Assembly (NCBI GenBank): GCA_002269645.1
Contig: NIVC01000073.1
Location: 496,001-560,000 of the forward strand
Source: Macrostomum lignano
Lineage: Eukaryota
Direction of reading: 5' to 3'
Length of the DNA stretch: 64,000 nt
Shown in pieces: positions 2,315-35,100 of this stretch. The translations under genes were made by a program, and so were the position numbers. The notes under the pieces were generated by a model. It worked only from the letters and a program-made list of their open reading frames with translations. It did not search any database and was not told where the DNA came from. Numbering within the stretch: the first letter of the stretch is position 1; every line of letters begins with the position of its first letter.

Positions 2315-3220
2315 GCTATATTTATATGATCTTAAATATAGCATAGGCAACATGCTTAATACTAGTTATTTTAGAATGACACAAAATCTTTCTAATAGGA
2401 ATAAATATCACAAATTTTAAAACTTCAAAAGACAAAAATACCAAGCAAAATGTAATAAAAACTTACATCTTTAGGAATCAACACAAATCTAGAGATTGCC
2501 GGATGAATATATTAGACCAAGTGATTACAATTTAATTAAACTCTAAAAAACTTAGCTAATTTCTTAAGTTTTCAATACAGCATGTAGTAACTTAGGATTA
2601 ATATAAATTATCTTTTCCTCAAACCAATGCGAAGTTTATTAATTATTGCTGACAAAGTTAAGTTAATTACATGCAAGCACGCGTTAAGTTGAAATTGAAT
2701 TTTTGAAATTGATCATTTGTAAATAATGCGCAACAATATGCGCAATGTAAATATAAACTTGAGAGCTCACTAGCTTGCTTTACTTGACAAGAACTTTTAG
2801 AAAGCGAACAAATATCAGTTATCGTCATCGATGCAATAAGTCTTTTAAGCTTGTTCGGGTAAATTGAAAATAGGCAAGTTTAGTCAGCTTTTTTGAGGTT
2901 GCTGATAACAGCTTAAACAATATGTATCTCACAACTTTAGGTTTATGATTGATAGTAGGCTAAAATTGGCTTTATTGTTTATTTTTTGTTCGTAAATTAA
3001 TCAAATAAAAAAAGTAATTATTAATAAAGAAAACTTTCCTGTTGACGTTTGAAACACAAATTTGAACAGTTAAGTTTCTTGTAAATAGGTATTGAGTATA
3101 TTTTCGCTGAAAACTGCAATCGTCCATTAGAAGTAAGTTATTTAATGCGTGTGATGTTTCATCAAGCCAGGAACCAGGAACCCTTTTTACTTTGGCAGTA
3201 GATGTTATATGTTATATGTT

Positions 3221-4283
3221 TTATTGGGCATTCTTTCGTTATAGAAGACTCAAAAATGTGTGACTTTCGTAATGGAAGACCCATGGAAAAGGGGAAGAAA
3301 TCAATCGAAAAACGAGCATTCACTAGGCCTAGCAAAATGAAAGCGTAGCAAAAGTTAATTCCACACAAAGTTGATGCTTTAATCGACAGTGCTTAATTTC
3401 ACACAAAGTTGTTATACTGTAATCGCAAGCGTTTATTCCACCAATCTCATACCCAGCCTGTCAAACTATAATACACTAGTGCCATGAGGTCACTGTGTAT
3501 ATACACTTTCGTTTTAGAAGACTGCAAAATAGGAATATTGCTTGTGGGTCTCCTGAAACGAAAGTAAGAAAGAAGCAGCGAGTAATTGGACCAGTTGACA
3601 GCCGCCTCACTCTCTAGTTGGTACATTGTCATCAGCGACCTACATGGGGTAAATATGGATGAAAGATACTTGTACGAGTACAAAAGATTCAGAAACGCAT
3701 GAAAGCAGCGTGTGCACGTACCCCCCCCCCTCACCTTCGAAAAAGAAGACCCAACTCATTTCACCTAAGTATTTACAACACTGAGGTCTTGCATTACGAA
3801 AGTAAGAGACCTTTATGTTAAACTTACTTGTTAAACTTGTTTCTGTTGAATTTCTAGACCACAATAGATTGCTTTTCTTCCATATCCCCTACTTTCGTTT
3901 CGGAAGACCTTTAATAGATGCTTAACATTGTTGGTCTTTTAAAACAAAACTGTATATATCAGACATTCATAGAAAATGTACCCAAGGCCGACATAGGAAA
4001 ACAAATCATCTAAACCCTACATTTCTGCAGCTTTTGTTGCTGCCACCCCTACTACCTTCATTTTGGAAGACCTTCAATGAAATAATAGCTTGATGGTCTT
4101 CTAAAACAAAACTGTAATATAAACTAATAAAGGACACACAAAGCCATTAAGAATAAACAAACAAAATAATAGACAACAATATGTGAGCAGATTCCTATGT
4201 TTTAGGTAGGTCTTCTTTTTCAAAACTGCCAGCTTCCTATTTGATACATAAAAGGTCTTCTAAAATGAAAGAATGCCAAAGAA
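3221..4283. repeat. Symmetric array of twelve 19-bp motifs with terminal inverted repeats (putative MITE/foldback or hairpin cluster)
   Basis: Consensus about ACTTTCGTTTTRGAAGACC. Forward copies at 3232, 3263, 3505, 3733, 3891, 4054; reverse copies at 3547, 3785, 3933, 4095, 4209, 4254. Imperfect outer IR of about 30 bp at 3221-3250 and 4254-4283. Confidence 0.75.
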
Positions 4284-5589
4284 GGGCCTAGTAAAAAAAT
4301 AATCTCACATTTGGCTATGCGGAGTTTCAGCAAAGTATTGTTTTCACTAGTAATATTTCGGCACAATCAGTTTTTGTTTTTTTGAGATCTTTTTTAAATT
4401 TCAATTGTATTCTTCAATTTTGTTTCTATAGTATTTGGTAATTTTGATGCTTTGTTACTTTAACATCACTCTTATTATTTGTAAGCCTACTTTTTTATTT
4501 GTAGGCCCTAATATTAAGCTGTTTCCTATTTGCTATTTTAAATCTTTTTTGTTTCCTTTTTGCTACTTTTGAGATACGGGCTATTTTCAAAATAGATGGC
4601 TATACACCAATACTGCAGCTACTAAGCCTAAGCTAAGCCATGTAAGGCCTAAGTGCAAATTTGTATGCTTCATGCCAAAAAATAATGCAGTGTATTCATT
4701 TGAATTCTACATTGTTTCTACATTTGAATTCTGCATCTGAAGATAGATTGACTAAATTTTTCCATCTTCTATAGGTCCTTAATTTTATGGGAAAAGTTAT
4801 TAAAAATATTGTAATCAAGAGATCATTCAACTATATATTAAGTCTATATTATTTTTTTAATTCATTGGAATATTACAATACTTTGCCTAAACATTTTTGT
4901 GATTTGCCAAAATATTACTTTGCTGAAACATCATATAGCCTTGTAGTTCTATAGACCATATTTGTTTTCAAATGTTATTTCTTATATTTTTATCACTTTC
5001 TCATTTTTTGCTAGAATCATGAATTCTATAGAATAGAAAAGAGCACCATAGATATAAATTTTGAAATATCCTCATATAACTATTTAAGTCAATTGTATTA
5101 GGCCTTCTTTTCCTTACTGACCTTAGATACTTTAGGTAAATAGCCTATAGGGCCTATCTTTAATCTTTATTCAAATAACTTTAAATGTTTGAAGCTATTA
5201 CTTATATTCAATAGTGATTTCATCTGCTACATTTTGGCAGCCATCTTTTTGTCTTTTAATATTCATGAAAAATCTGTTTATCTATCAGTTTCAATATTTT
5301 GTCTATTATGAAAGTTTTTAAGCCTTAAAGATATATATTAAATTGGAATTGGTCAATCATTTGGTTTGGCTTTTTGGTTTCCTGCTTTATTTTTTCTAAA
5401 ATTTTCTAATATTATTATTTTTCTAGCATTTTTTTCTGGCATTTCTAGATTAGCAATAACTAGTGAATAAATGACTTATTCACTTTAGCAGTAATTTTGA
5501 AGTAATTTTCTTATTTCAAAAGAGAGTAGTTGATTCATTCTATATTAGAGATGAACCAACAGAAGAAAAGCAAAAGATGCAATGAGAGA

Positions 5590-5980: not shown

Positions 5981-7940
5981 CAAAGGCCTCAAATCTTAAT
6001 TTAATATGCATTTACTCCAATTTTTTGTTTGCCTTCTTCCTAATTATTAACAAGTTTTTGTTTGAGCATGACTTTAAATTTAAGAATTTATGCAAAAATA
6101 GTTCCCGGAATTGGAATTCAGTGTTTTCAAAATCCCTGGGTTTCAATAGCTTGGGTTCATATTCTGCATCTGATTAGCCATCTGAATCAGGACTCTCATC
6201 TTCCATGCCAAATTGTATGGCAAGTGGAATTATCTTTTCTTGAGCTATAAGTGAATATATTATGAATTGTATCACACTGTATTCACTTCACTTTTATTTC
6301 TAAGCATTAGCCTTCTAGACATTCATGAATCATGACTATGTAGTATGCTCACTACACTGTATTAAGACAATTTTACAAATTACTTCACAGGCTGCCACTA
6401 GACAGCATACTGATTAGCTGTTATAAAAATGCAACTAATCTGCATGTAGTACTAATTAGATGGTGAGGCATTTAGACTTAATAATATGGTTATCATTACT
6501 CCTGCCTTTTATTCAAAATTGTTTATTTTGCTAAGCTTTCTTTTTTGGCCGCAAAGTAAGTCACATGGCCAGTGTAAATCAGGGGGTTGCGCATATATGT
6601 ATAGCATGCCATTTACATAACTTATATTCAAACAAGTAAATTATATATATTTTAATTTACTTATAAGTTGTCCTATAGGTCTAAGATTGTATCTAGGACT
6701 TACATTCTATTTGTCTATTAGTAAAAGTTGTTTTATTTTGCTAGCAAATAAAACATTGCATACCTTAGTTATATCTCATTCTTTATTAGCTTTCATATCT
6801 AGGCTAGCTTTTAGCAAACCAATGATATAAATTGTAGCACTTATAATTAAGTATTCTGTATTCATATCAATTCAGTTATAGTAAATGTTATGGAAATCAG
6901 TTGTGTCATAATTAATTTCTCAAATAGTCAATATCAATCATTATTGAAGTTTGCAATATGTTTGCATAATCTAAATTAAGTCTTATACTGTTTCTACACT
7001 GATTTCCCATACTGTAATATAATTTAAGTCAAATTCATAATTCAGCCACTGTGATAATAAATATTCAATAGCCTGTTATATTGTAATATTTATCAGTTAA
7101 TCAGTTTTTTCTATAATCATTATATATATGTATGGTTTAAATTTCTGTTTGACCTTTGCAAATGTATGTTTTTGAATATTTAATCCATATAGCATTGAGA
7201 AATTTCTTAGCTATAACAAAAGATACTAAAATAACTAGATAGGCCACTCAGGCATATATATATATATATATAATTAAACAGTTTTCTCTTTTTTGTTCAG
7301 TATCAAAGAAAATAAGAATATATAAACTACATTATAAAAACAAGGCAGCTGAAATGACTTTGATAAGTTTAGAAGCCCAAGATTGCATGTGTAAACAATT
7401 TGCTAATTGGTTCAGCAATAACATATATTAGCTAGTCCACTGAAATAAATGTATATGGCTACTTTAGGCTAGAATTCCAAGGAAGGCAATAAAAACTAAG
7501 ATGGGGCAAAATAGTAGTATGTAAAGGCACAGTTGGAGGTTTTAGTAGAGGTGAAGGATAAAAGCCAATAAATAAACCTTGGCTTTAAAAATACATTAAA
7601 TGCTTCTATTTAACGTGCTACTGAACTGAAAGTAGCTTTTATACTAATGTCCTAGCTAAGTGGTCCATCTAGTTATTTGAGTATCTGTGGCTATCACAAA
7701 TGTACTATTATAGGAAAATTTCTGATCAAATGGTATAAGTTTCATTAAAATTGGTTAAGCCATTTTTATTAAGTCAATCACATATATAGACAGATACTGG
7801 CAAGCCATAGAGGGTAAGGTAAAGATGATGGTATTTTTTTTAACTTTATGACTGATGCCAGCGGGCAATTGTTTTTCAATTTCGCATCCTGATTTTAGAC
7901 TCATGTTTATACTTTTAGCATTTGGGTTGTAGTCTAAAAT

Positions 7941-8391: not shown

Positions 8392-8748
8392 ATGGCTGAA
8401 GGCGGCGGTTTTGATCCATGCGAGTGCCTCTATGGTCATGAGAGCGCCATGCAGCGCCTATTGAATCTGCTGCGTCACGCCCAGGCCCAGTGCACAGATA
8501 CCGATTGCATCACTAATCCTGGCCAGCAACTGTTGCCTGGCGATCCGGCTAGTAATTCACCGTTCGGCAATCCCAGTCTGTGGCTGGCTCTGCTAGGCTG
8601 GATTGTTGTTGCTACGGCGCTTTTTGTAATGCGGCCTAGGAGTCTGCGTTTTGACGCTCAAAAGCCTGGTCGTGGCGGCGGCGGCAGTGATAGCGGAGGC
8701 AGCGGCGGCAGTGGCGGCAGCGATAGGGACCCACCTGTGGCCTCTTAG
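8392..8748 (+). CDS. SMIM14: Small integral membrane protein 14 homolog, single coding exon, 118 aa
   Basis: MAEGGGFDPCECLYGHESAMQRLLNLLRHAQAQCTDTDC matches the SMIM14 N-terminal signature (MAEGGFDPCEC..SHE.AMRRLINLLRQSQ..CTD..C), followed by one TM helix and LRP. Confidence 0.93.
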   Translation: MAEGGGFDPCECLYGHESAMQRLLNLLRHAQAQCTDTDCITNPGQQLLPGDPASNSPFGNPSLWLALLGWIVVATALFVMRPRSLRFDAQKPGRGGGGSDSGGSGGSGGSDRDPPVAS

Positions 8749-9040
8749 ATTAACAACGTTATAGGAGGATAGCGAAGACGCGTGGACTAAATTGGTCGAA
8801 GTTTTAACGTTTTTTTAACACTAAAAGTTTCAATTTTTGTTCGTCTATGTGCATCGGTGGTGAATGTATGTCGACGATTAGTCTGTCATCATTTTTTGGC
8901 ATTGTTAAGCGGCTGAAACAATTTGAATTGTACTAACTGGTCTTCCAGTAAAGTCTACTTTTAAATGGTTTTTGCTGGTCTGTCTGTTATTTGATTAGCC
9001 GCCTCTGTTCCTTTTCTGGATCTGGTTCCCCTGTCCTCTA

Positions 9041-9387
9041 CCCAGATCTCGATTCCTATTGGCCAGCCAGTCACCCCTCTCCCCTACCCCAGATCTCGAT
9101 TCTTATTGGCCAGCCAGTCACCCCTCTCCCCTACCCCAGATCTCGATTCTTATTAGCCAGCCAGTCACCCCTCTCCCCTAACCCAGATCTCGATTCCTAT
9201 TGGCCAGCCAGTCACCCCTCTCCCCTACCCAGATCTCGATTCTTATTAGCCAGCCAGTCACCCCTCTCCCCTACCCCAGATCTCGATTCCTATTGGCCAG
9301 CCAGTCACCCCTCTCCCCTACCCCAGATCTCGATTCCTATTGGCCAGCCAGTCACCCATCTCCCCTAACCCAGATCTCGATTCCTAA
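9041..9387. repeat. 47-bp minisatellite, about 7 copies
   Basis: Unit CCCAGATCTCGATTCCTATTGGCCAGCCAGTCACCCCTCTCCCCTAC. Confidence 0.95.
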
Positions 9388-10424
9388 AACTATTCAACCT
9401 GAAAACAAAAATGTTACGAATGTGTCGCTATATTTGCCAATTAATGTTAATATGTTTTTGCCTCTAAAAATAATTATAAAACTATAAGTGTCGTCATTTC
9501 TCCTTATTTTTTAGTTTGGCTCTTGCCTCGTAGTTGCTTTGCGCTTCTTCTTATAGCTTATTTTTTGTTTATAGATAATAACTTATTGAATAGGAAATGG
9601 TTTATAATTTCTGTCAACAAGCGTTATTGGAATATAATTTAGCTTAGCCATTTTGCAGTGCGTGGATGATATTATTTGGTTTTAAAAAACTGCAGACTAT
9701 ACTCCAGTGTCTATAATACAGTGCAACAAATAATTCTATATGCCCCGGGTTATAGCACATTTAGATATTCTCTCTATATCTGCCTTATTAAAATCTGTGC
9801 GAGAATATTTAATCAAAATTGTACAGTTCAATTGCTGTGTGAAATAATTTCAATGTTGTAATTGCTTAATTTTTTTGTTGCCTATTCGCAGTAACAACAA
9901 CCTTTTTTGTGTTATCATTTCAATAACTATAACTGCGCTAAAAGATGGTTTCTGCTGAGCCTTAATTATTTTTCTACTTATTTGTGATCTCGTCTCTACA
10001 GAGCTGACCTCCCTTTTGAGATGGCGCGCAACAGCATCCATCGAACTCCTCACGACTGTGCCAATCAACCAATCTCTAAGAAGTTTTTTATTCTGAAAAA
10101 ATTAATAAACTTTCTTCTTTTGACAAACGAATACCCCTTTTAAATAAGCTGATTGTCATTAGCGCTGTGTCATCTGTCTGTCAGTAATTCAAAACGATTT
10201 GTCGTCTTTCTTCGCTTTTTTTAGCTGTCTGTTTGTCTGTCTCCCAGCCTGCCTTTCTTGTTTCAAATTCGTACGCTAGTTTTCGGTTTGACTTTATTCT
10301 GGTAATATTAATGTTGCCTCGTTTTTGTGAATGCCTTGGTGTCTGGGTCCAATTAAATTTGACGTACAATATTGGACTTATCATTGTCAGATTCACAGTC
10401 GCTAGATCACCACCGTCCCAGATC

Positions 10425-11125
10425 CTCAGTTCCTGATCCAGCCTCCCAGTTCCTTAGTTGCTGGGCCAGCCTCCCAGATCCTCAGTTGCTGGGCCAGCCT
10501 CCCAGATCCTCAGTTGCTGGGCCAGCCTCCCAGATCCTCAGTTGCTGGGCCAGCCTCCCAGATCCTCAGTTTCTGGGCCAGCCTTCCAGATCCTCAGTCA
10601 CTGGGCCAGCCTCCCAGATCCTCAGTTACTGGGCCAGCCTCCCAGATCCTCAGTTGCTGAGCCAGCCTCCCAGATCCTCAGTTGCTGAGCCAGCCTCCCA
10701 GATCCTCAGTTGCTGGGCCAGCCTCCCAGATCCTCAGATGCTGAGCCAGCCTCCTAGATCCTCAGTTGCTGGGCCAGCCTCCCAGATCCTCAGTTACTGG
10801 GCCAGCCTCCCAGATCCTCAGTTGCTGAGCCAGCCTCCCAGATCCTCAGTTGCTGGGCCAGCCTCCCAGATCCTCAGTTGCTGGGCCAGCCTCCCAAAGT
10901 CCTCCGTTGCTGGGCCAGCCTCCCAAAGTCCTCAGATACTGGGCCAGCCTCCCAGAGTGTCAGTTGCTTGGCCAGCCTCCCAGATCCTCAGTTCCTGATC
11001 CAGCCTCCCAGTTCCTTAGTTGCTGGGCCAGCCTCCCAGAGTGTCAGTTGCTGGGCCAGCCTCCCAGATCCTCAGTTTCTGGGCCAGCCTCCCAGATCCT
11101 CAGTTGCTCGTCCAGCCTCTCAGAT
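10425..11125. repeat. 28-bp minisatellite, dispersed family locus 1
   Basis: Unit GGGCCAGCCTCCCAGATCCTCAGTTGCT, about 25 copies. Confidence 0.95.
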
Positions 11126-11676
11126 CCACAGTTTTTCATAACGGCAAGCTCAGCTGTCACTCTACGACCCTGCAGATTCGACATAACTTTCTAAAAGCCC
11201 GTTAGATTATGTCTCGGTGTCCAAATAAAAATAATTTAAATTTGTTTTGCTGCTGTAACCCACGTACGGGCCTGAACTGTTTTACTCCTTTTCTTGTATT
11301 GCTGCTTTCCCTGGTCGTTATGAAATGCTCCGTGTGTATTTTCTGCCCACATTGTTTTTTTAATAAACCACCCCGTCTAGTTTTTTGTTGCCGTGATGCT
11401 TTGGTTTTGGGGGATTTAGCCAATATATATTTTTTTTCTCCGTTTCAAAGCGCGAAAGACAGTCTGAGTCTAATAAATCCCTTATAATTGTCAATTTTTT
11501 TGGTTGAATCGCATTCTAAAACTGCAAGCTCGAGAGCTCTGTGTTTGTTATTTGTTACTCATACTAATTGAAGCTGTCTGAAAAAAAGTATGCGGGCTTT
11601 CTAGGAAAGTACGAACATCCCACATCTGGCCTGTGGCCTTGTGCCTCAGCACTGCATCACATTTCACAAAATTTTC

Positions 11677-12445
11677 TCCTCCTTCCAGGAGATGCCCAGC
11701 ATTCTTCTGTTTGTCTCCTCCTTCCAGGAAATGCCCAGTATCCTTATGTTAGTCTTTTTCTCCTTCCAGGAAATGCCCAGCATCTTTCTGTTAGTCTTCT
11801 TCTCCTTCCAGGAAATGCCCAGCATTCTTCTGTTTGTCTTCTCCTTCCAGGAAATGCCCAGCATCCTTCTGTTAGTCTTCTCCTCCTTCCAGGAGATGCC
11901 CAGCATTCTTCTGTTTGTCTTCTCCTTCCAGGAAATGCCCAGCATTCTTCTGTTTGTCTTCTCCTTCCAGGAAATGCCCAGCATCCTTCTGTTAGTCTTC
12001 TTCTCCTTCCAGGAAATGCCCAGCATTCTTCTGTTTGTCTTCTCCTTCCAGGAAATGCCCAGCATCCTTCTGTTAGTCTTCTCCTCCTTCCAGGAAATGC
12101 CCAGCATTCTTCTGTTTGTCTTCTCCTTCCAGGAACTGCCCAGCATCCTTCTGTTAGTCTTCTTCTCCTTCCAGGAAATGCCCAGCATTCTTCTGTTTGT
12201 CTTCTCCTTCCAGGAAATGCCCAGCATTCTTCTGTTTGTCTTCTCCTTCCAGGAAATGCCCAGCATCCTTCTGTTAGTCTTCTTCTCCTTCCAGGAAATG
12301 CCCAGCATTCTTCTGTTTGTCTTCTCCTTCCAGGAAATGCCCAGCATCCTTCTGTTAGTCTTCTCCTCCTTCCAGGAAATGCCCAGCATTCTTCTGTTTG
12401 TCTTCTCCTTCCAGGAAATGCCCAGAATTCTTCTGTTAGTCTTTA
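11677..12445. repeat. 39/42-bp minisatellite, probably intronic to TMEM170
   Basis: Units CCTTCCAGGAAATGCCCAGCATTCTTCTGTTTGTCTTCT and a 42-bp variant are interspersed. Confidence 0.93.
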
Positions 12446-12547: not shown

Positions 12548-12952
12548 GCGGACAACTCCAGTGAGCTGACTATTTCCCCAGCAACAGTCGGTCCGACATC
12601 TGATTCGCCTGAAGCAGTCGATGTTGGCGACGACTACCAGTATATCTGGCTGACCATATTCCTGTGGACTATGGGATTATCGCTTGTGCTGCACCTTGGC
12701 GCTTTAGTTGTATCGGCTGTTTACCTACGTCTGCATCGGATTGGCAAAGTTTTCCCTCTGCTATTTATTGTGGGATTTGTTTACAGTTTGCCTAGTCACG
12801 CTATCAGCGGCCTGTGCTTAGCATTCGTGTATTATTCCGCGAGTCTGTTGGGGCACAGTTTTTTTAGTTTCTATCACGCCATTGCCTGGTCTGTTGTGCT
12901 TAATCTGTTGTCAACTGTACTGCCCTTCTCTGGACTCACTTCGTTGCTTTGA
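12548..12952 (+). CDS. TMEM170: TMEM170-like membrane protein, 3' exon (start exon not located)
   Basis: YIWLTIFLWTMGLSLVLHLGALVVSAVYLRLHRIGKVF...ISGLCLAFVYYSA...FSGLTSLL* resembles TMEM170 (W.G.FLW.L.SS...H..A..L...LR.HK.G.F ... A..Y..A ... SF.R.L.TL). No in-frame ATG precedes the conserved part. Putative acceptor CCCGCAG ends at 12547. Confidence 0.75.
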   Translation, partial: ADNSSELTISPATVGPTSDSPEAVDVGDDYQYIWLTIFLWTMGLSLVLHLGALVVSAVYLRLHRIGKVFPLLFIVGFVYSLPSHAISGLCLAFVYYSASLLGHSFFSFYHAIAWSVVLNLLSTVLPFSGLTSLL

Positions 12953-15227: not shown

Positions 15228-15661
15228 GGCGATCCTACAGTTTTCCGCTTTTAATTATTTTTCGGCTTTTCTGAGTGATCACTGACCAGTGGGCCACCTA
15301 TAATCAACTGGCCAATCATGTGACCATTAATCACTCTATCCGGTTTGTCAACCCCAATGATCCTACCATCCATACAAACACCATTGAGGGTGCATGGGCC
15401 AACTGCAAGGCCAAGTACCAGGCAATGCATGGTATTACAGAAGGCCTATTTGAGATGTACCTCCAAGAGTTTTTATGGCGCCGGCTGTTTCAAGAGTGCC
15501 AATTTGGGAACATGTTGTATTGGATATGCCATTATTATCCATGTTAACTGTGCTGACTATCATGAGTGACTATTATAAAAGTTTATCGTCATTTCTTATT
15601 CCTGCTATGCCTGCCATAATTTTTCGAAAAATAATTAAAAGCGGAAAACTGTAGGATCGCC
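15228..15661 (+). mobile_element. Merlin (IS1016/IS1595-related) DNA transposon, internally deleted, 434 bp
   Basis: Perfect 37-bp TIRs GGCGATCCTACAGTTTTCCGCTTTTAATTATTTTTCG at 15228-15264 and 15625-15661. 8-bp TSD GTGTTTTA/ATGTTTTA. Interior 15275-15547 encodes a transposase C-terminus (ITDQW..Y..L..H.TINHS..FV.P....HTNTIEGAW...K...YLQEFLWRR). Confidence 0.92.
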
Positions 15662-18600
15662 ATGTTTTATTGTACTATATTATAAATAACTTTAAAGTTT
15701 TTAAATCTATAATGATTAGGGCCTAATAATCTAAAATAGTTTATATATATCTTTGTTTTTTATCTTTTTGTTGGCCTAATATTTAGTAATTTTTTAATTT
15801 ATAACTATGGCTATAGGAATATACAAAATGTAGCTGCAATTACTATATTTATATAGTTGTAGCCATAAAAAAAGCTATCTATTACTATGTATATCTGTAG
15901 TTGCCATAGTCACCTATCACACTAGCTTTGCTTTGGCAGAACACTTTCTAATTCTATATTATGTAGTATGCTTATAAAGTGATGCAAAATATTCATAGGC
16001 CCTTATATGCCTTGTAAGATCATAGATATAATGATACTTTTAGGATAGTAATTTTTCCTAGTTTAGGCCTTTATCTTTTGATTCAAGTTTTTTCTGATTC
16101 TGAAAGCAGTTTTATTTAAGCTTTAGGTCTAGTTATTGGTATATGACTTGCTATGTATATATGAATAGTACTTAGGTAGTAGCATACATGCGCAACAGTC
16201 GGCCGAGTTGGCCAATCCAGCTGACCAATTTGGCGGCCAACCAAGGAAGTCGCAAAAATGCCCACCCAAAAAAATAGTAGTACCAAAATAGTAATACTAA
16301 GTAGCTGACAAGGCATTTTGAATTAATAAGACTGTCATAGCTACTTCTGCCGTTTACCCAAAGTTGCGTTAATTTTGCCTTTGGGTTTTTTTACTTGTAA
16401 GTCACATTTTTGGCCAAAAACTACGTTGCATTTTTGTTAAAGCTAAGTCGCATGGCCAACCAAATTTTGGAGGTTCCACATGTATGGGTAGTAGGCCAAA
16501 GGTTGGAAAAGATCTTAATCTTAATCATCAAGATCTTGGGCTTGGATATAGTTTAAAACACTTTGTACCCTAGAAAAAATAACTAAATTTTTAGTATATA
16601 CCCATGCCAGACTCCAGATAGTATACATATATGCCAGAATTTTCTGGCATATAGAGACCTAGATTATACCATTGGTGTACAACTTGGCGTACAAAGGAGC
16701 CTGGCATGCCCTCTTGGCATATAGCTTGGCATATAGAGAATGCTGAGACCAGCAGGTGGGACCAAAAGTTCTGAGTCCCAACAATCAATCTATACAGTTA
16801 GCATACAAAAATGATTAAGTTTGTATTTGGTGTAGTCTCCATGTACATAGTTAAAGTAACTAAATTTTAATCAGAAAGAATAGCTGGCCCTTTATGAAAA
16901 AATGGAAAACTAAATTAAAACACCAGGTTTAACTCTTCCAAAAAATTAAAAGTAAAACAAAAATAGTTGAAATGAACTATTCTCTACAGTTTAGTAAAAA
17001 ATGTTTCAGTTTAACTCATAAGTTTTTTGAATATTAAAATTTTGCAAGATTTTAATATTGGTTATAATTTGTAATTTTTATTTTGGTGTATTTTTGTATA
17101 CAATAAAAAGTTCATTGGCGTACATTGGCATGCATGAGCTACGGAAGCAAATCTTGTTCCAGCGTATAGCAGTATACAATCCTGACCCTGGTACTAATGT
17201 ATTTCAAATATATTACCTTCTGCAAAGTTCCATATTGTCAATTTTGAAATGTTATTACTAGGCTAAAGATTTGGAATGTCAAATTTCTATATCCCAGAAA
17301 TTTCTAGCATACATGCCTTCTTTTAAGTATAGGATCTTTACACTTTTTTCAGTCTCAATCTCAGTTTTGAGATCTTAAAAAAGTAAAAATTGTGATTCTA
17401 TAACTTTTTATGACTATGCATAATGTTATATTAGTCTTTCAATTTGTTTTGTGAAAGGCCTATTATTTTCAAGTTTGAATTAGTGCTTTAATATAGTGCT
17501 ATAGTAGAAAATTATGTTTATGGCAAAAAGGTACAGGAAATATTATTTGAAAATTCTTTAGCCTCTAGCTTTATCTACCACTCTAGCTATGGCTCTATTT
17601 ACTACTTTATTAACTGCTCAGGGTCAGAGACAAAGGCAATTTATTATAGTACTAATTCAAACTAATTAAAAAAATATTGCAAAACAAACTCAAAGATTGT
17701 TAAATATTTTCAAACTTATTTGAAATATATCAAATTATTAATATGCTCTCCATATTTTCAATAATGATTGGTTTTCGTTCTATTATAATATCTACATATA
17801 AAAATGAAAACTTTGTTTATCTGTGTATGTATAATTTTGATTGCTATGGACTCCCAAACTGCTCAACCAACTGATACCAAATTTTGCACCTACCCTAAAC
17901 TCACTATGGAAAATGTCTTAGGCTACCTTAAAATTTCCTAAACTCAAGTCTTCCTATCTAAAAGTGCAAAAAAACTGCTCAAAATGTGTGAGTTTTTCAC
18001 TAAATTCTCCATAGCGCTACTCCAGTTTTACCAATCTTCTTCAAATTTAACTTAATTATTCTACAAGTTTTTTGACACCATTGTGTAAAATTTGAGTCTC
18101 AAAGTTACTCCTGAATAGTGCTATGCACTTTTAAAGTTAGTCTGCTTTTTGTCAGCAAGACATCCACCCCGACCTCCACCTCTCTCTCTTTCTCTCTTTT
18201 ATATCTGGCAAGATGTGAAAAAAGGTTTGAAGCAATTGACATTAAACTTGACACAATTCTACATTGACTTATTTCTTTGTCTAATTATAGTCTCAACTCT
18301 GTAACTCAATCAGAATAGAAACTGTAAGCATGTGAAGTTTGTCTGCTTCTTCTGTTGTTTGTGCTGCTTATCCAACTCATTCCCCAGACAAAGGATCAGG
18401 CAATAGGGCTTAGTATACATAGCAAGTGTACAGTGTTTTGAATAAATTTAAATTTTTTATAGCCTTCTCTATTGGTCTTCTCTAGGTTTTCTATACTTCA
18501 AGAGCTAGAAATAGCCAATAATAATTTAGAAAACTTGAAAAATGCCTTTCTTTACACAGGCCAATTAGAACTATAGCCACCTTAGTGTGTGGCCCCTTTA

Positions 18601-19575: not shown

Positions 19576-19953
19576 ATGGATGCCAACACTGCTGCTGACT
19601 CGGCTGCTGCCCCGGCTCCTAATCCTGATCGGGCAGCCGCAGCCGCGTCTGGCGACGGTCCCCGACTGTATGAGCTGCGCCAAGAAGTGCACGTGGTGTC
19701 CAACATAATGCGCGACAATGTTAACAAAGTGATTGAACGCGAGGGTCACCTGTCTGATTTAGTTGAACGATCGGAGAATTTGCAAGACTCGGCGGCCGCT
19801 TATCAGCGTACAACAACCGCTTTGCGACGTAAAATGTGGTGGCAAAATACTAAAATGCGCATCATTATTGGCGTAGCCGTGGCCGTTATAGTCATCATTA
19901 TTATTATGGCTATACTGGGCTCTGCTGGCGTTTTCGATAGCAAGAGCAATTGA
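19576..19953 (+). CDS. Synaptobrevin/VAMP family R-SNARE, single exon, 125 aa
   Basis: RLYELRQEVHVVSNIMRDNVNKVIEREGHLSDLVERSENLQDSAAAY...LRRKMWWQNTKMRII is an R-SNARE motif with a zero-layer R, followed by a C-terminal TM helix. Confidence 0.95.
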   Translation: MDANTAADSAAAPAPNPDRAAAAASGDGPRLYELRQEVHVVSNIMRDNVNKVIEREGHLSDLVERSENLQDSAAAYQRTTTALRRKMWWQNTKMRIIIGVAVAVIVIIIIMAILGSAGVFDSKSN

Positions 19954-20440: not shown

Positions 20441-21562
20441 TTAGGCGTCAGGCCCTACACTGAGTTTCGTTTGCCTTATTGGGTTCACTTTCGTACATGA
20501 AGTTAAATTCTTGTTGTTCATTCTTAACCCCATATGCTCTTGAGAACGCAAAGCCTGAGAAAGGAAGGAAATTTTATCTGCTATTTTAAATTTAAATGAC
20601 ACTGCGCAGAAAACTACTGAAGAAAAGTGACATCTACTGCAGCTATTCAAGTGTCTGTGGTATGCCTTTAATTTAAAAAAGGAAACTACTAAGATTTTTG
20701 GGTCGGATTTTTATTGGAAGTTCTCCAATTGTAAACAAGACTTGTGAACAGAATATTGGCTACTGTATTGTGCCAGCATTGTTAAATCTTTTTTAATTTT
20801 GCTTGTTTCTCTTTCAAATTTATAACTTTTATTATCAACTACTGACTAAGTAGTCTGGAGTTGTTCTTTTTTCAAAATTTTGCGTGAGCCTATTTTTATA
20901 CTGTTTTGTTGTCATTCCCGACTCTTAATATACTTGTTCTTATTCTAGTCACAAAATTATGTGTTTAATAACGAGTTCTATTTTTACGAGGGAAACGACA
21001 GATTTTGTCGGTTTTTGACTAAAGGCTTTTGTTTTTTCAGAAACCGAATCGAGTAACGCCTCTCTGCTTCTAGAGGCTTCTGTGTAATTTTTGTGCAATA
21101 AATTTCAATTATTATATTAATCACATTATCGATTAACTACTGTCTGTCAATTTTTTAAGTGTTGTCTTATTTTTAAAACAGCTTCAGTTATTGTAGTCCT
21201 CGTATATTTTTATTATATTTTGTCTCTAGTCGCACTAAACCATTCTAGTCTAAGTCTAAATCTTAGTCTAGTAGCCAGTTTCTGTTGTTGCAACAATCTA
21301 GTAGATTGGAAGCCTTGTTATTGTTATTTTGTTACAAAAAATAAAGAACGACATGTACTCTAAAAACTTTTTAAAACGATTTGTTAGCCTCAGTAAATAT
21401 TTTTTATTTTAATTGAAATAGGTGTGTTAGATACGTGCTGTCATCATAAAAATGATTTAGGTGTCATGTGACTGTCCAATAATGCTTTAACTCTGTCTAT
21501 TATAAAGTATAGTTTACTCTGAACAATCCCTAGAGTTTTCAATAAACAATCCCTCCCTAAAG

Positions 21563-23025
21563 TTCACTCTGAACAGTCTCTAGAGTTCACTATGAGCAGT
21601 CTCTAGAGTTCACTCTGAACAGTCTCTAGAGTTCACTATGAGCAGTCTCTAGAGTTCACTATGAGCAGTCTCTAGAGTTCACTCTGAACAGTCTCTAGAG
21701 TTCACTATGAGCAGTCTCTAGAGTTCACTCTGAACAGTCTCTAGAGTTCACTATGAGCAGTCTCTAGAGTTCACTATGAGCAGTCTCTAGAGTTCACTCT
21801 GAACAGTCTCTAGAGTTCACTATGAGCAGTCTCTAGAGTTCACTATGAGCAGTCTCTAGAGTTCACTCTGAACAGTCTCTAGAGTTCACTATGAGCAGTC
21901 TCTAGAGTTCACTCTGAACAGTCTCTAGAGTTCACTATGAGCAGTCTCTAGAGTTCACTATGAGCAGTCTCTAGAGTTCACTATGAGCAGTCTCTAGAGT
22001 TCACTCTGAACAGTCTCTAGAGTTCACTATGAGCAGTCTCTAGAGTTCACTATGAGCAGTCTCTAGAGTTCACTATGAGCAGTCTCTAGAGTTCACTATG
22101 AGCAGTCTCTAGAGTTCACTATGAGCAGTCTCTAGAGTTCACTCTGAACAGTCTCTAGAGTTCACTATGAGCAGTCTCTAGAGTTCACTATGAGCAGTCT
22201 CTAGAGTTCACTCTAAACAGTCTCTAGAGTTCACTCTGAACAGTCTCTAGAGTTCACTATGAGCAGTCTCTAGAGTTCACTCTGAACAGTCTCTAGAGTT
22301 CACTCTGAACAGTCTCTAGAGTTCACTATGAGCAGTCTCTAGAGTTCACTATGAGCAGTCTCTAGAGTTCACTATGAGCAGTCTCTAGAGTTCACTATGA
22401 GCAGTCTCTAGAGTTCACTCTGAACAGTCTCTAGAGTTCACTATGAGCAGTCTCTAGAGTTCACTATGAGCAGTCTCTAGAGTTCACTCTAAACAGTCTC
22501 TAGAGTTCACTCTGAACAGTCTCTAGAGTTCACTATGAGCAGTCTCTAGAGTTCACTCTGAACAGTCTCTAGAGTTCACTATGAGCAGTCTCTAGAGTTC
22601 ACTATGAGCAGTCTCTAGAGTTCACTCTGAACAGTCTCTAGAGTTCACTATGAGCAGTCTCTAGAGTTCACTATGAGCAGTCTCTAGAGTTCACTATGAG
22701 CAGTCTCTAGAGTTCACTCTGAACAGTCTCTAGAGTTCACTATGAGCAGTCTCTAGAGTTCACTATGAGCAGTCTCTAGAGTTCACTATGAGCAGTCTCT
22801 AGAGTTCACTATGAGCAGTCTCTAGAGTTCACTCTAAACAGTCTCTAGAGTTCACTCTGAACAGTCTCTAGAGTTCACTATGAGCAGTCTCTAGAGTTCA
22901 CTCTGAACAGTCTCTAGAGTTCACTCTGAACAGTCTCTAGAGTTCACTCTGAACAGTCTCTAGAGTTCACTCTGAACAGTCTCTAGAGTTCACTCTGAAC
23001 AGTCTCTAGAGTTCACCCTGAACAA
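21563..23025. repeat. 23-bp minisatellite, about 63 copies, two main variants
   Basis: AGTCTCTAGAGTTCACT + ATGAGC or CTGAAC (rarely CTAAAC). Degenerate related units continue at about 23450-23700. Confidence 0.97.
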
Positions 23026-24545: not shown

Positions 24546-24567
24546 CTTGACTATTTTGCTCCCGCAG

Positions 24568-25941
24568 AAGAAAAAGGCAGCAGCCGCCGCAGCAGCGGCA
24601 GCCGGCAGCGGCAACAATGGCCCGCCGTCAAACAAAGCCGCCAATATTGTCGGTCCCGGCCAGCCGCCACCCGGTATGCCGCCGCCACCGCCGTCGCAGC
24701 AGCACCAGCCGCAGCATCCCTATCATCATCACCAGCAGCAGCAGCAGCAGCAGTATCCGCACTCGCAGATGATGTATTCGCAGCATCCAAGCGGCCCTGG
24801 GATGCCAGCTGGGCTGCGGCCGCCGCATCCGCAGCAGCATCATCACCCCGGTGGCTACCCGGGTCACCCGCCGCCGATGCCGCAGCAGCAGCAGCAGGCC
24901 TACATGAGCATGATGCAGCATCCAAATCAGCCTCCCGGCCATCTCTATCCCAGAGCGCCTCCGCCGCCGCACTATCCTGGCATGGGCGTGCCCACCAATC
25001 ATCGCATGATGCAGCAGTCTCATCCGTCCCAGTATCCGCCCCATCAGTATCAGCAGCAACAGCAGCAGCATCAGCCACAACAAATGATGCCATCTCAACA
25101 ACCCGCAGCCTCAGCAGCTCAGCAGATGCCGCCCCATCAGTATCAGCAGCAGCAGCAGCAGCAACAGCAGCAATCGATCTCATACGATCTCCCAGAAGAC
25201 TTAGCTAGCTTGTTCGAACCAATGCCGCCAGTGAACGATAATTCGGCTCCTTTACGTCAGCAGCAGCAGTCTTCTCAGCTGCCAGAGATTCACCTTCTAG
25301 ATGGCGAATTAGATTCCACAGCTCAGCCTCCGCAATCATCGTCTGCAACAGCAGCGACTGTTAAAGCTGGCGGACCTGGTAGCAATAATTCCTCATCCGC
25401 TAACAGCAATAATAACAGTAATAATAAAAGCAAATCTGCTTTAACTAAGAAAGCTTCAACAGTTAGCAACAACAGCAATGGCATGGCCGAGCATCAAGCT
25501 GCCACAATTGCACCTAATTCTCCCGCTGTTAACAATAACAACAACAACAACAATAATAATAACAACAACAATGGCAAGCCATTAGCTACAATTGGTAGCG
25601 GCCAAAATAATAACAATGGCTGTTTAGAGACTCATCTACAGGCGTTTATGGCTAGCCTGCGCGCGTCGGATGAAGTATTGGCTGCTAGACGGTTAGTTGC
25701 CTCGTATAGAGACGATTCTGTTGAATACAGTCCGCCGGTGGCTGCTCCAGCCTCTGCTCAGCAGCAGCAATCTTCATCGTCTGTACCGCCAACTCCGGTG
25801 TCTGCCGCAATGACACCGGCTTCTGTTGTTGCATCGCCGGCTAGCGGCATTGTGGAGTCCTCTTCGTCAGCTGGCAATAATAGCAATAATAATGGCCGGC
25901 CCCCTGTTTCATCAACGCCGCCAATATCTGTTAGCAGTGGT

Positions 25942-25973
<32 letters not shown>

Positions 25974-26097
25974 ATATTCGTACACTAATGCTTCTACATC
26001 TTCTGCCCAGCAGCCCTCCGCGTCTGTTAACTATAACAGCAGCACGCCTGGACAGCAAGCTATCTATCACAACTCCAACTACTACGGTTCCGCATAA
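24568..26097 (+). CDS. Candidate Mastermind-like protein, exon 2 (spliced product about 638 aa)
   Basis: Acceptor TTTTGCTCCCGCAG at 24567 is phase 0, in frame with exon 1. The long open frame has poly-Q/P/N/A tracts and acidic hydrophobic patches (DLPEDLASLFEP, LPEIHLLDGELD). Confidence 0.75.
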
Positions 26098-26168
26098 CTG
26101 CGTGTTTTACTACAACAGATCGTGTTTACTATTGGTTTTCTTGTTCTACGAGTATTATAGCTAAAGTA

Positions 26169-26797
26169 AGGTGTTGGGGCAGCTTGTGTGTACACGAATA
26201 GTGGATTCAATTCCGTCAGTGAGGCGTTGGGGAAGCTTGTGTGTACACGAATAGTGCATTCAATTCTGTCAGTGAGGTGTTGGGGCAGCTTGTGTGTACA
26301 CGAATAGTGCATTCAATTCCGTCAGTGAGGCGTTGGGGAAGCTTGTGTGTACACGAATAGTGCATTCAATTCTGTCAGTGAGGTGTTGGGGCAGCTTGTG
26401 TGTACACGAATAGTGCATTCAATTCCGTCAGTGAGGCGTTGGGGAAGCTTGTGTGTACACGAATAGTGCATTCAATTCTGTCAGTGAGGTGTTGGCAGCT
26501 TGTGTGTACACGAATAGTGCATTCAATTCCGTCAGTGAGGCGTTGGGGAAGCTTGTGTGTACACGAATAGTGCATTCAATTCTGTCAGTGAGGTGTTGGG
26601 GCAGCTTGTGTGTACACGAATAGTGCATTCAATTCCGTCAGTGAGGTGTTGGGGAAGCTTGTGTGTACACGAATAGTGCATTCAATTCCGTCAGTGAGGG
26701 GTTGGGGCAGCTTGTGTGTACACGAACAGTGCATTCAATTCCGTCAGTGAGGGGTTGGGGCAGCTTGTGTGTACACGAACAGTGCATTCAATTCCGT
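26169..26797. repeat. 53-bp minisatellite, about 12 copies with A/B alternation
   Basis: Units alternate GGTGTTGGGGCAGC...TTCCGTCAGTGA and GGCGTTGGGGAAGC...TTCTGTCAGTGA, giving a 106-bp higher-order repeat. Confidence 0.93.
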
Positions 26798-26910
26798 GAG
26801 TGGGAGAGCGTGGGGTGGTGGGTGCTACGATAGTGAATTTAGTGAATTCTTTTCTTCGTCCCGTGGACACAAAATCCTGCATTAGATAGATTTCATTTTA
26901 GTCAAACTCA

Positions 26911-27080
26911 AATTCTATTTCGTTTGCACTAGCTGAAATTGGATAATTAGATAATTATTATAGCCAGAGGCGCAATCGTATAATTGCCTTCGACACAAGT
27001 TATTCACTCATCTACTCTTTCATCTTGCCGACAGACACAGCCTTGAATCAAATTTCAGCTAGTGCATTCAAAATAGAATT
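26911..27080. mobile_element. Small MITE-like inverted repeat
   Basis: 30-bp IR AATTCTATTTCGTTTGCACTAGCTGAAATT at 26911-26940 vs 27051-27080, 3 mismatches. No clear TSD. Confidence 0.45.
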
Positions 27081-27639
27081 TACTTTTGCTGAAATAGAAT
27101 GAGAAAACCATTAGTAACGATATTAACTACATGTGTAACTACTACTAATTATTAGTAGCTTATTTAGAGTTTTATGTGTGCACTTGTATTTTATAACTAT
27201 ATGTTTATTATATTTTTACATAATATGTGTTTTTGCATGTTGCTATATACATTTTTTCAGTTGTACATTAGTAGTATAAGTAGTATACTTTGTGCAGTTT
27301 ATTAATCGCTTAATGTGTTTGAGTAATAGCGTCTATTGTTGTGCCGCCCTGTTTGCGACGGATTTATTGCTTCAAAGTCCCCCGCCAACGGGCCGCTCTG
27401 CTCTGCTAAATGTTAGAAAATAGAGCCATTTTCTGTTAAAATATGATTATTTAGCATATTCGAATTTATCCTGCTTTTCGCCGCTCTGTTTCTATTTTTT
27501 TTGCCTCGCTCGCTGCCGCCTTCGCGTATTTAATTGCACAGTTTCACTTCTTTGCGATCGAACCAGTTACCTATCTTAGATTTCTAATAGTCTTTCCGTT
27601 TTAATGAATTCATGGACCTATCGCCAACCTCCCTGATCC

Positions 27640-28146
27640 TCCCAGATCCTCAGTTGCTGGGCCAGCCTCCCAGATCCTCAGTTGCTGGGCCAGTCTCCGA
27701 AAGTCCTCAGATGCTGGGCCAGCCTCCGAAAGTCCTCAGATGCTGGGCCAGCCTCCGAAAGTCCTCAGATGCTGGGCCAGCCTCCCAGATCCTCAGATGC
27801 TGGGCCAGCCTCCCAGATCCTCAGATGCTGGGCCAGCCTCCCAGATCCTCAGATGCTGGGCCAGCCTCCCAGATCCTCAGATGCTGGGCCAGCCTCCCAG
27901 ATCCTCAGATGCTGGGCCAGCCTCCCAGATCCTCAGATGCTGGGCCAGCCTCCCAGATCCTCAGATGCTGGGCCAGCCTCCCAGATCCTCAGTTTCTGGG
28001 CCAGCCTCCCAAAGTCCTCAGATACTGGGCCAGCCTCCCAAAGGCGTCAGATACTGGGCCAGCCTCTCAAAGTCCTCAGATACTGGGCCAGCCTCTCAAA
28101 GTCCTCAGATACTGGGCCAGCCTCTCAAAGTCCTCAGATACTGGGC
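27640..28146. repeat. 28-bp minisatellite, dispersed family locus 2
   Basis: Same unit and orientation as 10425-11125. Confidence 0.95.
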
Positions 28147-28969
28147 ATATTACCCACAAACGAATCACCCTCCCCCCTCTATTCTACGCACTAACCCAAA
28201 CCAAGAGAAGTATTTAAAGCTTGTTAATTAAAAGATCAATTCTTATTTTAACAGCGTATTATTGTTAACTGTTTTTAATCATGCAATCATTGAGTGGCGT
28301 GCTTAATTGTTTAATTTTTCTTTACTGTCATCCAAGATTCTTGGATGAATTCTTGGACGCGTGTAGCAGCACTCATCTTCCGCATTCTGCTAATGCCCTA
28401 TTATCTCAATGTTGTTGCCTCTCTCGCTTCGTTGTACGAGTATTATGATTGTTAACAAACGCATGAATATTTTAATAAACCGTTTGTTAAGCTGTTTGCC
28501 ATTGTTTGCGCAATATGCTATTTTCATTTGTGTTGTTGAAAAAATATTTATTGTCGTCTGTTGTCCCCTCCTATGATGGAAGTATGCCTATGAATGTACG
28601 TCTCTTTTTTGTTTATCAATTCTTGCTTAGAATTGCTATACTTACTACTTACTTCATATACGAATAAGTAGCTAAAAATGTACAACTGCCGCATTGTACA
28701 TAGACTTTTCAGCGGCCACCTACCAGTTTTGGCCACAGGTTTTATCTTAGAAACACAATTTTGCACTGTCAAATTATGTATATGTTAATGCTAAATATGT
28801 GAAATTCGCTTAAAATGTACGTTTTACAAAATGCAAAACATGCATGTTTTATTTACAAATATTCAATCCAAACGGAAGTTTTCTTAAGTCTCCTTTTGTT
28901 TTTTACTGTTGAATAATTATGCTTGCTATTGTGAATTTGGATTCTGTTGCATGTGGTTATGATGTGCTG

Positions 28970-30022
28970 CGCCAGCCTCCCAGTTCCTCAGTTGCTGGGC
29001 CAGCCTCTCAGATCCTCAGTCACTGGGCCAGTCTCCCAGATCCTCAGTTGCTGGGCCAGCCTCCCAGATCCTCAGTCACTGGGCCAGTCTCCCAGATCCT
29101 CAGTCACTGGGCCAGTCTCCCAGATCCTCAGTCACTGGGCCAGTCTCCCAGATCCTCAGTCGCTGGGCCAGCCTCCAAGATCCTCAGTCACTGGGCCAGT
29201 CTCCCAGATCCTCAGTCGCTGGGCCAGCCTTCCAGATCCTCAGTTACTGGGCCAGCCTCCCAGATCCTCAGTTACTGGGCCAGCCTCCCAGATCCTCAGT
29301 TACTGGGCCAGCCTCCCAGATCCTCAGTTGCTGGGCCAGCCTCTCAGATCCTCAGTCGCTGGGCCAGTCTCCCAGATCCCCAGTTGCTGGGCCAGCCTCT
29401 CAGATCCTCAGTCACTGGGCCAGTCTCCCAGATCCTCAGTCACTGGGCCAGTCTCCCAGATCCTCAGTCACTGGGCCAGTCTCCCAGATCCTCAGTCACT
29501 GGGCCAGTCTCCCAGATCCTCAGTCGCTGGGCCAGCCTCCCAGATCCTCAGTCACTGGGCCAGTCTCCCAGATCCTCAGTCGCTGGGCCAGCCTCCCAGA
29601 TCCTCAGTTACTGGGCCAGCCTCCCAGATCCTCAGTTGCTGGGCCAGCCTCTCAGATCCTCAGTCGCTGGGCCAGTCTCCCAGATCCTCAGTTGCTGGGC
29701 CAGCCTCTCAGATCATCAGTTGCTGGGCCAGCCTCCCAGATCCTCAGTTTCTGGGCCAGCCTCCCAGATCCTCAGTTTCTGGGCCAGCCTCCCAGATCCC
29801 CAGTCGCTGGGCCAGTCTCACAGATCCTCAGTTGCTGAGCCAGCCTCCCAGATCCCCAGTCGCTGGGCCAGTCTCACAGATCCTCAGTTGCTGGGCCAGC
29901 CTCCCAGATCCTCAGTTGCTGGGCCAGCCTCCCAGAGTGTCAGTTGCTGGGCCAGCCTCCCAGAGTGTCAGTTGCTGGGCCAGCCTCCCTGTGTGTCAGT
30001 TGCTAGGCCAGCCTCCCAGTTG
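28970..30022. repeat. 28-bp minisatellite, dispersed family locus 3
   Basis: Same unit and orientation, about 37 copies. Confidence 0.95.
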
Positions 30023-32905: not shown

Positions 32906-32940
<35 letters not shown>

Positions 32941-34831: not shown

Positions 34832-35088
<257 letters not shown>

Positions 35089-35100
35089 TCACACGCGCAG

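Follow-up and report, generated by a model that had tools for sequence, protein, structure and literature searches.

We describe an array of short bipartite sequence motifs at positions 3227-4282 of a 64-kb stretch of the Macrostomum lignano genome (hereafter, the window; assembly Mlig_3_7, GCA_002269645.1, contig NIVC01000073.1, with record positions equal to window positions plus 496,000). The content of the window is that of animal DNA and includes a synaptobrevin gene, a DUF2615/SMIM14-like gene, a TMEM170 gene, nuclear-receptor exons, copia- and gypsy-type fragments, and minisatellites. The 2-8 kb stretch, to which the array belongs, is AT-rich, CpG-poor (observed/expected 0.37) and rich in traces of mobile elements. 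The genome of M. lignano is neopolyploid: its three subgenomes diverge by about 2% in single-nucleotide polymorphisms, and long insertions account for much larger differences (PMC10733133). Two homeologous contigs, NIVC01004325.1 and NIVC01002879.1 (labelled L105 and L106, not necessarily in that order), span the initial ~15 kb of the window. Their identity to it is 82-95%, long insertions and deletions are numerous, and the two are identical to each other in the compared stretch. With one further, unrelated M. lignano locus that was reached via protein look-ups (L107), these contigs add ~60 kb to the window, so that ~125 kb of M. lignano DNA was examined in all; a further locus, L108, belongs to a different assembly. 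The DUF2615 protein is recorded on both homeologous contigs, and the TMEM170 protein on NIVC01000073.1, the DNA of which matches window 2551-22952 exactly.

Limits of the array and its absence from the homeologs

The array is a discrete presence/absence unit, because L105 and L106 align to the window up to position 3226 and again from 4283 but lack everything in between. Window 2379-3226 corresponds to L105 4626-5480 (89% identity, blastn), and window 4283-4950 corresponds to L105 5571-6188 (82%); the segment between these alignments is 1,056 bp long in the window, which is exactly the array, and 89 bp long in the homeologs. A preliminary description of this locus, made from the sequence alone, had recognized one array at 3221-4283; the single array stands, but the comparison with the homeologs sets its true limits at 3227-4282. 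The left limit coincides with the start of the outermost inverted repeat (GGCATTCTTTCG...), the homology with L105 stopping exactly at 3226, and the right limit lies five bases (AAAGA) past the last base of that repeat (...GAATGCC), the junctions reading ..TTTTATTG / element / AGGGCCTAG... The terminal inverted repeat is 23 bp long and can be extended to 29 bp.

The DUF2615 reading frame differs between the window and the homeologs by 2 synonymous changes in 357 nt, with flanks that are 89-95% identical. Given that the adjacent gene differs by these two changes only, the presence/absence difference is one between close relatives. The array is a ready marker that separates this homeolog from the other two.

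Motif copies and internal anatomy

The array comprises 12 clear copies of the motif, six forward (F; starts at 3232, 3263, 3505, 3733, 3891 and 4054) and six reverse (R; starts at 3547, 3785, 3933, 4095, 4209 and 4254), in the order F F F R F R F R F R R R, an orientation string with perfect mirror symmetry. Among them are four head-to-head (inward-facing) pairs with gaps of 23, 33, 23 and 22 nt. The coordinates, orientations and gaps are all as given in the preliminary description, and the enrichment of the motif over shuffled controls is borne out: the strict pattern YTTCR-N5-GAAGACY has 7 matches against 0.08 expected, a count of at least 7 being reached in none of 100 shuffles. When up to two mismatches are allowed, the whole window yields 30 matches against 30.2 by chance; 12 of these fall within the 1.06 kb of the array, and the remaining 18 are scattered as chance predicts. 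Clustered copies occur nowhere else in the 64 kb, and self-comparison of the window reveals no other copy of any part of the array.

An alignment of the twelve copies gives the consensus YAS-TTTCG-N5-GAAGACC. The motif is indeed bipartite, as first described, but the conserved unit is 20 bp rather than 19 bp long, because three more upstream bases (Y-A-C/G) are conserved as well. In agreement with the earlier account of conserved ends around a variable middle, the information content is highest in the two end blocks and low in the middle 5 nt; the copies agree pairwise at 10-19 of the 20 bases. The spacers between the motifs are unique, as had been claimed, without meaningful mutual homology in either orientation. 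A position weight matrix (PWM) built from the twelve copies detects a thirteenth, decayed copy on the minus strand at 3326-3345 (score 11.9; ~0.3 matches above 9 are expected per 6 kb). This copy faces the copy at 3262, so that F-[F R*], not FF, is the correct reading of the left end; the arrangement with two copies at each end (FF...RR), noted previously, holds for the clear copies but not once the decayed copy is counted.

The individual copies, the hairpin units H1-H4 and the best-matching partners are listed in Table 1. Every variant of the motif has a forward and a reverse representative, and the long-range best partners reported in the preliminary description are recovered. The hairpin unit of ~66-70 bp (end-loop-end) occurs three times, in both orientations. 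In whole-unit alignments, H1 matches the reverse complement of H3 (score 54.5) better than direct H3 (36), and H4 matches H3 directly (75); similarly, the degenerate hairpin H0 mirrors H2, with a score of 36 for the reverse complement of H2 and 26 for direct H2. Copies B and B' stand 222 and 218 nt from the two sides of H1, as calculated from the coordinates. The B/B' and C/C' pairs interleave, and therefore neither simple nesting nor one large palindrome describes the whole array. A large simple palindrome with homologous arms is ruled out by these interleaved partners together with the lack of inverted homology between the spacers.

Table 1. Features of the motif array, with positions in the window
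Feature	Position	Strand	Description
Whole element	3227..4282		1,056 bp; 89 unrelated bp stand instead in the homeologous contigs
Left terminal inverted repeat	3227..3249	+	GGCATTCTTTCGTTATAGAAGAC; holds motif copy A; 21/23 bases match the right repeat
Right terminal inverted repeat	4255..4277	-	Reverse complement GGCATTCTTTCATTTTAGAAGAC; holds motif copy A'; followed by element-specific AAAGA at 4278-4282
Motif copy A	3231..3250	+	TTCTTTCGTTATAGAAGACT; PWM score 24.8; best partner 4254
Motif copy B	3262..3281	+	GACTTTCGTAATGGAAGACC; 31 bp inside A, orientation as A; best partner 3785 (18/20), TAATG middle common to both
Decayed 13th copy	3326..3345	-	CGCTTTCATTTTGCTAGGCC; forms degenerate hairpin H0 with B; resembles the 4253-4280 region
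Hairpin unit H1	3498..3567	+	Arms 3504-3523 (+) and 3547-3566 (-); 23-nt gap
Hairpin unit H2	3732..3804		Arms 3732-3751 (+, type C) and 3785-3804 (-, type B'); 33-nt gap; poor arm match, 14/20
Hairpin unit H3	3888..3958	-	Arms 3890-3909 (+) and 3933-3952 (-); inverted relative to H1
Hairpin unit H4	4051..4121	-	Arms 4053-4072 (+) and 4095-4114 (-); old tandem duplicate of H3, offset 162-163 bp
Motif copy C'	4209..4228	-	CAGTTTTGAAAAAGAAGACC; 45 bp inside A', orientation as A'; best partner 3735 (17/20), GAAAAAG middle common to both
Motif copy A'	4254..4273	-	TTCTTTCATTTTAGAAGACC; from best-partner alignment and PWM
Pair A/A'	3234 / 4254		Common GGCATTC flank; 17/20 bases
Pair B/B'	3265 / 3785		Common TAATG middle; 18/20
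Pair C/C'	3735 / 4209		Common GAAAAAG; 17/20
Pair D/D'	3507 / 3933 and 4095		Common TATATACA flank
Pair E/E'	3893 and 4056 / 3547		Mutual best matches, 15-18/20

The H3/H4 duplicate gives a measure of what has been preserved within the array. The arms are identical at 37 of 40 positions, and the loop and flanks at 76 of 106, near the aligner null of ~68% (Fisher p = 0.007); with the remainder this close to noise, the motif sites are kept while all else drifts. The TATATA flank is common to H1, H3 and H4 by descent, and therefore the TA duplications around the small hairpins are not independent evidence. The spacing within pairs is 39-40 bp in three of them and 50 bp in the fourth, a difference of about one helical turn. 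Helical phasing of the pairs was considered on this basis, but the regularity is weak and we do not rely on it.

Several lesser observations concern the motif itself. Two lone motif-like 20-mers, at window 17947-17966 (minus strand, CACTTTTAGATAGGAAGACT, score 15.7) and at L107 20646-20665 (minus strand, TACTTTATTTTTAAAAGACC, score 15.9), stand apart from any partner or array and could be solo sites or have arisen by chance. Another, loose motif, AGG(G)CCTAG / TTTATTTGTAGGCC, which resembles the main motif with GGCC replacing GACC, is found in both orientations at 4283-4300 and 4472-4507, just outside the array, and at 3325-3343 inside it. CpG decay was considered as the source of the TTTCG to TTTTG or TTTCA variants, in view of the low local CpG ratio, and was not adopted, methylation as a cause not being established in M. 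lignano.

Interpretation of the array

The array is real and well delimited, with an unusual internal layout, and probably of an ordinary kind, namely, an unclassified non-coding DNA element specific to one homeolog. More specifically, the reading that we prefer, at about even odds, is that 3227-4282 is a non-autonomous foldback or MITE-like (miniature inverted-repeat transposable element) DNA transposon, or a relic of such an element, carried by only one of the region's three homeologous copies. The preliminary description had put forward two interpretations, a non-autonomous transposon or foldback built of transposase-binding sites and a set of four hairpins resembling microRNA (miRNA) precursors, and the former is the better supported: the array is a discrete unit bounded by terminal inverted repeats, present in one homeolog and absent from two, located among ordinary transposable element (TE) insertions, with motifs conserved over spacers. 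The terminal repeats coincide with the limits of the unit exactly on the left and within 5 bp on the right. The element is AT-rich and has no coding capacity, the longest frame being 95 aa with a start codon and 102 aa from stop to stop; the translation of the latter has no homologue among 1.84 billion protein representatives. Because the surroundings are full of traces of mobile elements, a repeat-bounded 1-kb insertion or deletion is most simply explained as another mobile element.

If the array is such a transposon, the 20-mer would be the predicted binding site of a transposase with a bipartite DNA-binding domain, the conserved blocks (Y)TTCG and GAAGACC lying around a free 5-nt middle with centres ~11 bp apart, that is, one helical turn. 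The two outermost sites, inside the terminal repeats, would place cleavage at the element ends, and the second sites, 31 or 45 bp inside the ends, would act as inner sites, comparable to the inverted repeat/direct repeat (IR/DR) layout with two sites per end (PMC5224488). The internal head-to-head pairs may serve as additional binding sites, or each may be a nested mini-copy (end-loop-end, ~66-70 bp) from the same family that arose by internal deletion. Given that only copies with intact sites can be mobilised, the sites would be conserved through the history of the family while the spacers drift; selection for mobilisation would thus act across the element family and not at this locus.

Several observations weigh against a transposon. 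As the preliminary description also noted, there is no visible target-site duplication (TSD): none is present at the outer ends or at any sub-element, and no direct repeat of at least 3 bp fits the inverted-repeat ends, although the nearby insert at 433-2378 and the Merlin-type MITE at 15228-15661 do carry TSDs. No second copy of the element, the hairpin unit or the terminal repeat occurs in the remaining 63 kb of the window or the ~60 kb of other M. lignano DNA from L105, L106 and L107; likewise, no transposase with this motif in its ends was identified, and none is linked to the array. A search of viral and Joint Genome Institute (JGI) metagenome contigs with the motif patterns produced single chance matches only and no clustered-motif locus, a result that says little because these collections are largely prokaryotic, environmental and viral. 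The check for an empty orthologous site, proposed in the preliminary description, gave a mixed outcome: both homeologs lack the array, but the site is not cleanly empty, being occupied by the 89 unrelated bases, and therefore two events or one complex event are needed. This filler has no similarity to the array, the array ends or the surrounding flanks; its derivation from an array remnant, or as a repair insert templated from the flanks, finds no support in the comparisons. Insertion in this lineage and deletion in the other cannot be told apart from these sequences. Furthermore, the B/B' and C/C' partner pairs interleave instead of nesting, which simple nested insertion leaves unexplained. 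The mobility of the element is putative.

Assignment to a known superfamily meets similar difficulties. For Tc1/mariner elements (including pogo), CAGT-type ends and a flanking TA duplication are expected, but the outer ends of the array are GGCATTC and no TA duplication flanks them; TA/CAG is found at some internal copies only, where it belongs to a flank that these copies have in common by descent. As in Merlin (IS1595-like) elements, the ends start with GGC, but there is no 8-9-bp TSD, and the terminal repeat of the Merlin-type MITE at 15228-15661 is unlike that of the array.

The closest likenesses are to foldback and MITE-like non-autonomous DNA transposons, such as Drosophila FB and Tetris (PMC4079207) and Tm1 of the root-knot nematode (PMC3169594), with which the array shares the non-coding content, the bounding inverted repeats, the repeated short motifs in the arms and the possibility of snap-back; its presence/absence difference between related chromosomes recalls these elements as well, with the proviso that the site in the homeologs is not cleanly empty. 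Unlike in the array, the interior of which alternates in head-to-head pairs, the repeats of foldback elements run in one direction through the left arm and in the opposite direction through the right; the array also differs from this class by showing no TSD and by being known from one copy in the ~125 kb. The subterminal regions of En/Spm (CACTA) elements contain a 12-bp TNPA motif in direct and inverted copies that are bound as tail-to-tail dimers. The array similarly has one short motif in both orientations, partly as inverted pairs, in a non-coding element, but lacks the CACTA termini and the 3-bp TSD, and its motifs extend across the whole element rather than being confined to subterminal zones. 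In Sleeping Beauty, the inner and outer sites are spaced ~165 bp apart. The array resembles this and other Tc1-like elements of the IR/DR type (PMC5224488) in having two same-orientation site-like copies at each end and a bipartite site of ~20 bp, which fits a paired-like domain with two helix-turn-helix units. However, the inner sites of the array are only 31 and 45 bp from the outer ones, the ends are GGCATTC rather than CAGT without a TA duplication, and there are 8-9 further internal sites. The CENP-B box nTTCGnnnnAnnCGGGn, the site of a pogo-derived protein (PMC11804003), has a bipartite 17-bp layout and the same YTTCG(TT) block with which the array motif opens. The second block of the array motif is GAAGACC, not CGGG, and the CENP-B box has no match in the window even with one mismatch. 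Bacterial REP/BIME arrays are prokaryotic and depend on an HUH-type transposase. They serve here as an analogy only: like the array, they cluster copies of one imperfect short palindrome that alternate in orientation and are joined by variable linkers. Nothing ties them to the present locus.

Were the transposon reading true, the array would represent an uncatalogued family of non-autonomous DNA elements in M. lignano, a regeneration model, and its terminal sites, near inner sites and row of internal end-to-end pairs would illustrate, in compact natural form, the number of transposase-binding sites that a single element can carry. The finding does not touch any long-standing open question.

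The best-surviving rival, which we regard as unlikely, is a palindromic array that grew in place and was never mobile, through inverted and tandem duplications of a ~70-bp hairpin unit (by fold-back priming and template switching); the other homeologs would then have lost the array, long inverted repeats being unstable and deleted at the base. Such growth accords with the H3/H4 tandem duplicate that includes flanks, the mirroring of H3 by H1 and of H2 by H0, the position of B and B' at nearly equal distances from H1, the perfect mirror symmetry of the orientation string, and the lack of both a TSD and another copy; the observed limits would likewise follow if deletions ended at the base of the outer repeat. 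Neutral decay of a duplicated array, however, predicts equal divergence throughout, yet the motifs are 70-95% identical and the spacers are at the noise level, and the 89 unrelated bases in the homeologs are left unexplained.

Less probable still is that the host uses the palindromes as clustered binding sites for a sequence-specific factor, perhaps transposase-derived, with the array serving as an enhancer, an insulator, or an origin-like or architectural element. The conservation of the motif among free spacers is compatible with this possibility, as are the bipartite motif, in which one helical turn separates the blocks and TTC-N6-GAA forms an inner dyad, the pair spacings that differ by about one turn, and the occurrence at a single locus within the DNA examined. 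But a distance of 4.1 kb, with other TE-like inserts in between, separates the array from the nearest gene start, and the array matches no nameable factor site, the core of the CENP-B box included. Resemblances to heat-shock, STAT, IRF/Blimp, nuclear-receptor and Smad sites were dropped because the spacing or the half-sites do not fit. Since neither homeologous copy of this gene neighbourhood has the array, it does not constitute a conserved regulatory module. An equally doubtful proposal makes the array a working device confined to one subgenome, either a palindromic-operator landing pad for a DNA-binding protein, perhaps transposase-derived, or a young TE-born hairpin-RNA cluster that feeds small-RNA pathways; in either case, the contrast between conserved 20-bp sites and fully diverged spacers would stem from selection on this very locus and not on a transposon family.

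The least probable of the readings is a young hairpin-RNA locus, that is, a cluster of miRNAs or small interfering RNAs, possibly TE-derived and most likely transcribed from the minus strand. In its favour, the hairpins recur every 150-230 bp over ~1 kb with arms better conserved than loops, as in paralogous miRNA clusters, and two of the four fold well. H1 alone folds at -23.7 kcal/mol (z -4.4), and once 30-nt flanks are included, a clear advantage over shuffles is seen for H1 (z -3.6 and -6.5) and H4 (z -3.2 and -2.2) only, the z values of H4 ranging from -2.2 to -4.5 across the folds with and without flanks. With the same flanks, H2 does not form on the plus strand and has a z of -0.7 on the minus strand, and H3 (z -0.5 and -1.3) is not distinguishable from shuffles. 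The stems are ~19-20 bp long without a contiguous lower stem, short of the ~33 bp or more that is the criterion for animal miRNAs.

The sequences of the arms show no pairing-specific co-variation. The mean number of Watson-Crick positions is 14.5 for the local pairs and also 14.5 for all 36 forward-reverse pairs; with G:U pairs on either strand included, the real arrangement of the internal arms is equalled or beaten by 8 of 24 permutations. There is no sign of pairing kept by compensatory change, local arm pairs matching no better than permuted ones; hairpins under selection as RNA would show better-matched local partners, and as these do not, it is the sequence, not the pairing, that has been kept. 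The motif is also kept in five copies that lack an intact local partner, namely, four with none at all and B, which is opposed by the decayed copy only. Differences between arms that remain G:U-compatible are commoner on the minus strand (mean 2.5 per local pair) than on the plus strand (1.75), a point in favour of minus-strand hairpins. The whole window has no match in Rfam 15 at the gathering score, and with a permissive E-value the best matches in the array region (E ~0.8-1) score far under threshold. A resemblance to the hammerhead ribozyme (CGAAA, GUC) was dropped, there being no CUGAUGA, no helix II and no Rfam match.

Hairpins of MITEs are known to give rise to miRNAs, human MADE1/miR-548 being one such case. 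Each hairpin of the array is, like those in the plant cases (PMC3086885), a short end-loop-end palindrome of pre-miRNA size; unlike these, two of the four are thermodynamically unremarkable. Small-RNA libraries of M. lignano exist (PMC4604429). The second interpretation in the preliminary description, the four pre-miRNA-like hairpins, thus fails most of its tests, the absence of the locus from the homeologs among them, and is poorly supported; the array is more likely a mobile element than a miRNA cluster.

Neighbouring elements and other features of the window

The surroundings of the array include several mobile-element traces. A 1.95-kb insert at 433-2378, absent from the homeologs, is flanked by an 8-bp duplication (ACACAAAA); this insert, together with the sequence just upstream, contains ~470-bp direct repeats around GC-rich minisatellites (1002-1604). 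Conversely, a 303-bp MITE (terminal repeat ATACATGCGCAAC) is inserted at L105 7392-7694 in the homeologous contig only, and has an 88%-identical inverted copy at window 16183-16486; therefore, ordinary repeat families recur within ~100 kb here. Two MITE-like inverted-repeat elements, at 4313-4940 (32-nt terminal repeats) and 7213-7694 (39-nt), have terminal repeats that are 81-82% matched; the former is common to the homeologs, and the latter falls in a stretch of 1.5 kb (6143-7680) that is specific to the window. At 15228-15661, the Merlin-type MITE is bounded by terminal repeats of 37 bp that match perfectly (GGCGATCCTACAGTTTTCCGC...) and flanked by an 8-bp target duplication, (G/A)TGTTTTA. 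Inside it is the C-terminal portion of a DDE transposase of the IS1595/ISXO2 type (Pfam PF12762, E = 1e-9), and it appears to be a very young insertion. The 11-mer ATGTTTTATTG adjoins both the left end of the array (3216-3226) and the right end of this MITE (15662-15672), which could be due to chance (estimated at roughly 0.1-0.2) or to a common target preference.

A scan for tRNAs found none in the window, and a scan for bacterial-type promoters and terminators was uninformative, the genome being that of an animal. The density of minisatellites, which have units of 20-80 bp, is extraordinary (76 rows in Tandem Repeats Finder), for example, at 9028-12443, 21557-23016, 26165-30019, 31961-37630 and 54004-55633. 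Several of them create long spurious reading frames, and one 28-bp unit recurs at 10416-11133, 27638-28146 and 28965-30019. Broken retrotransposon remains with several frame breaks occupy 45572-51200 on the minus strand, where reverse transcriptase and RNase H of gypsy type, which share 61% identity with an M. lignano protein, adjoin copia-type integrase and reverse-transcriptase fragments.

Among the genes, the DUF2615/SMIM14-like frame (8392-8748, 118 aa) and the synaptobrevin frame (12551-12952, 125 aa, the product having no recorded gene model) are each complete in a single exon, and the TMEM170-like gene at 19576-19953 is a single-exon model of 133 aa without an ATG start. A 516-aa open frame on the plus strand at 24547-26097, with Q/P/H/N runs and no Pfam match, may be an exon of a low-complexity nuclear protein. 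The nuclear-receptor exons (37693-42113, plus strand) are thyroid-hormone-receptor-like, with bivalve receptors as the best named relatives, at 36-42% identity.

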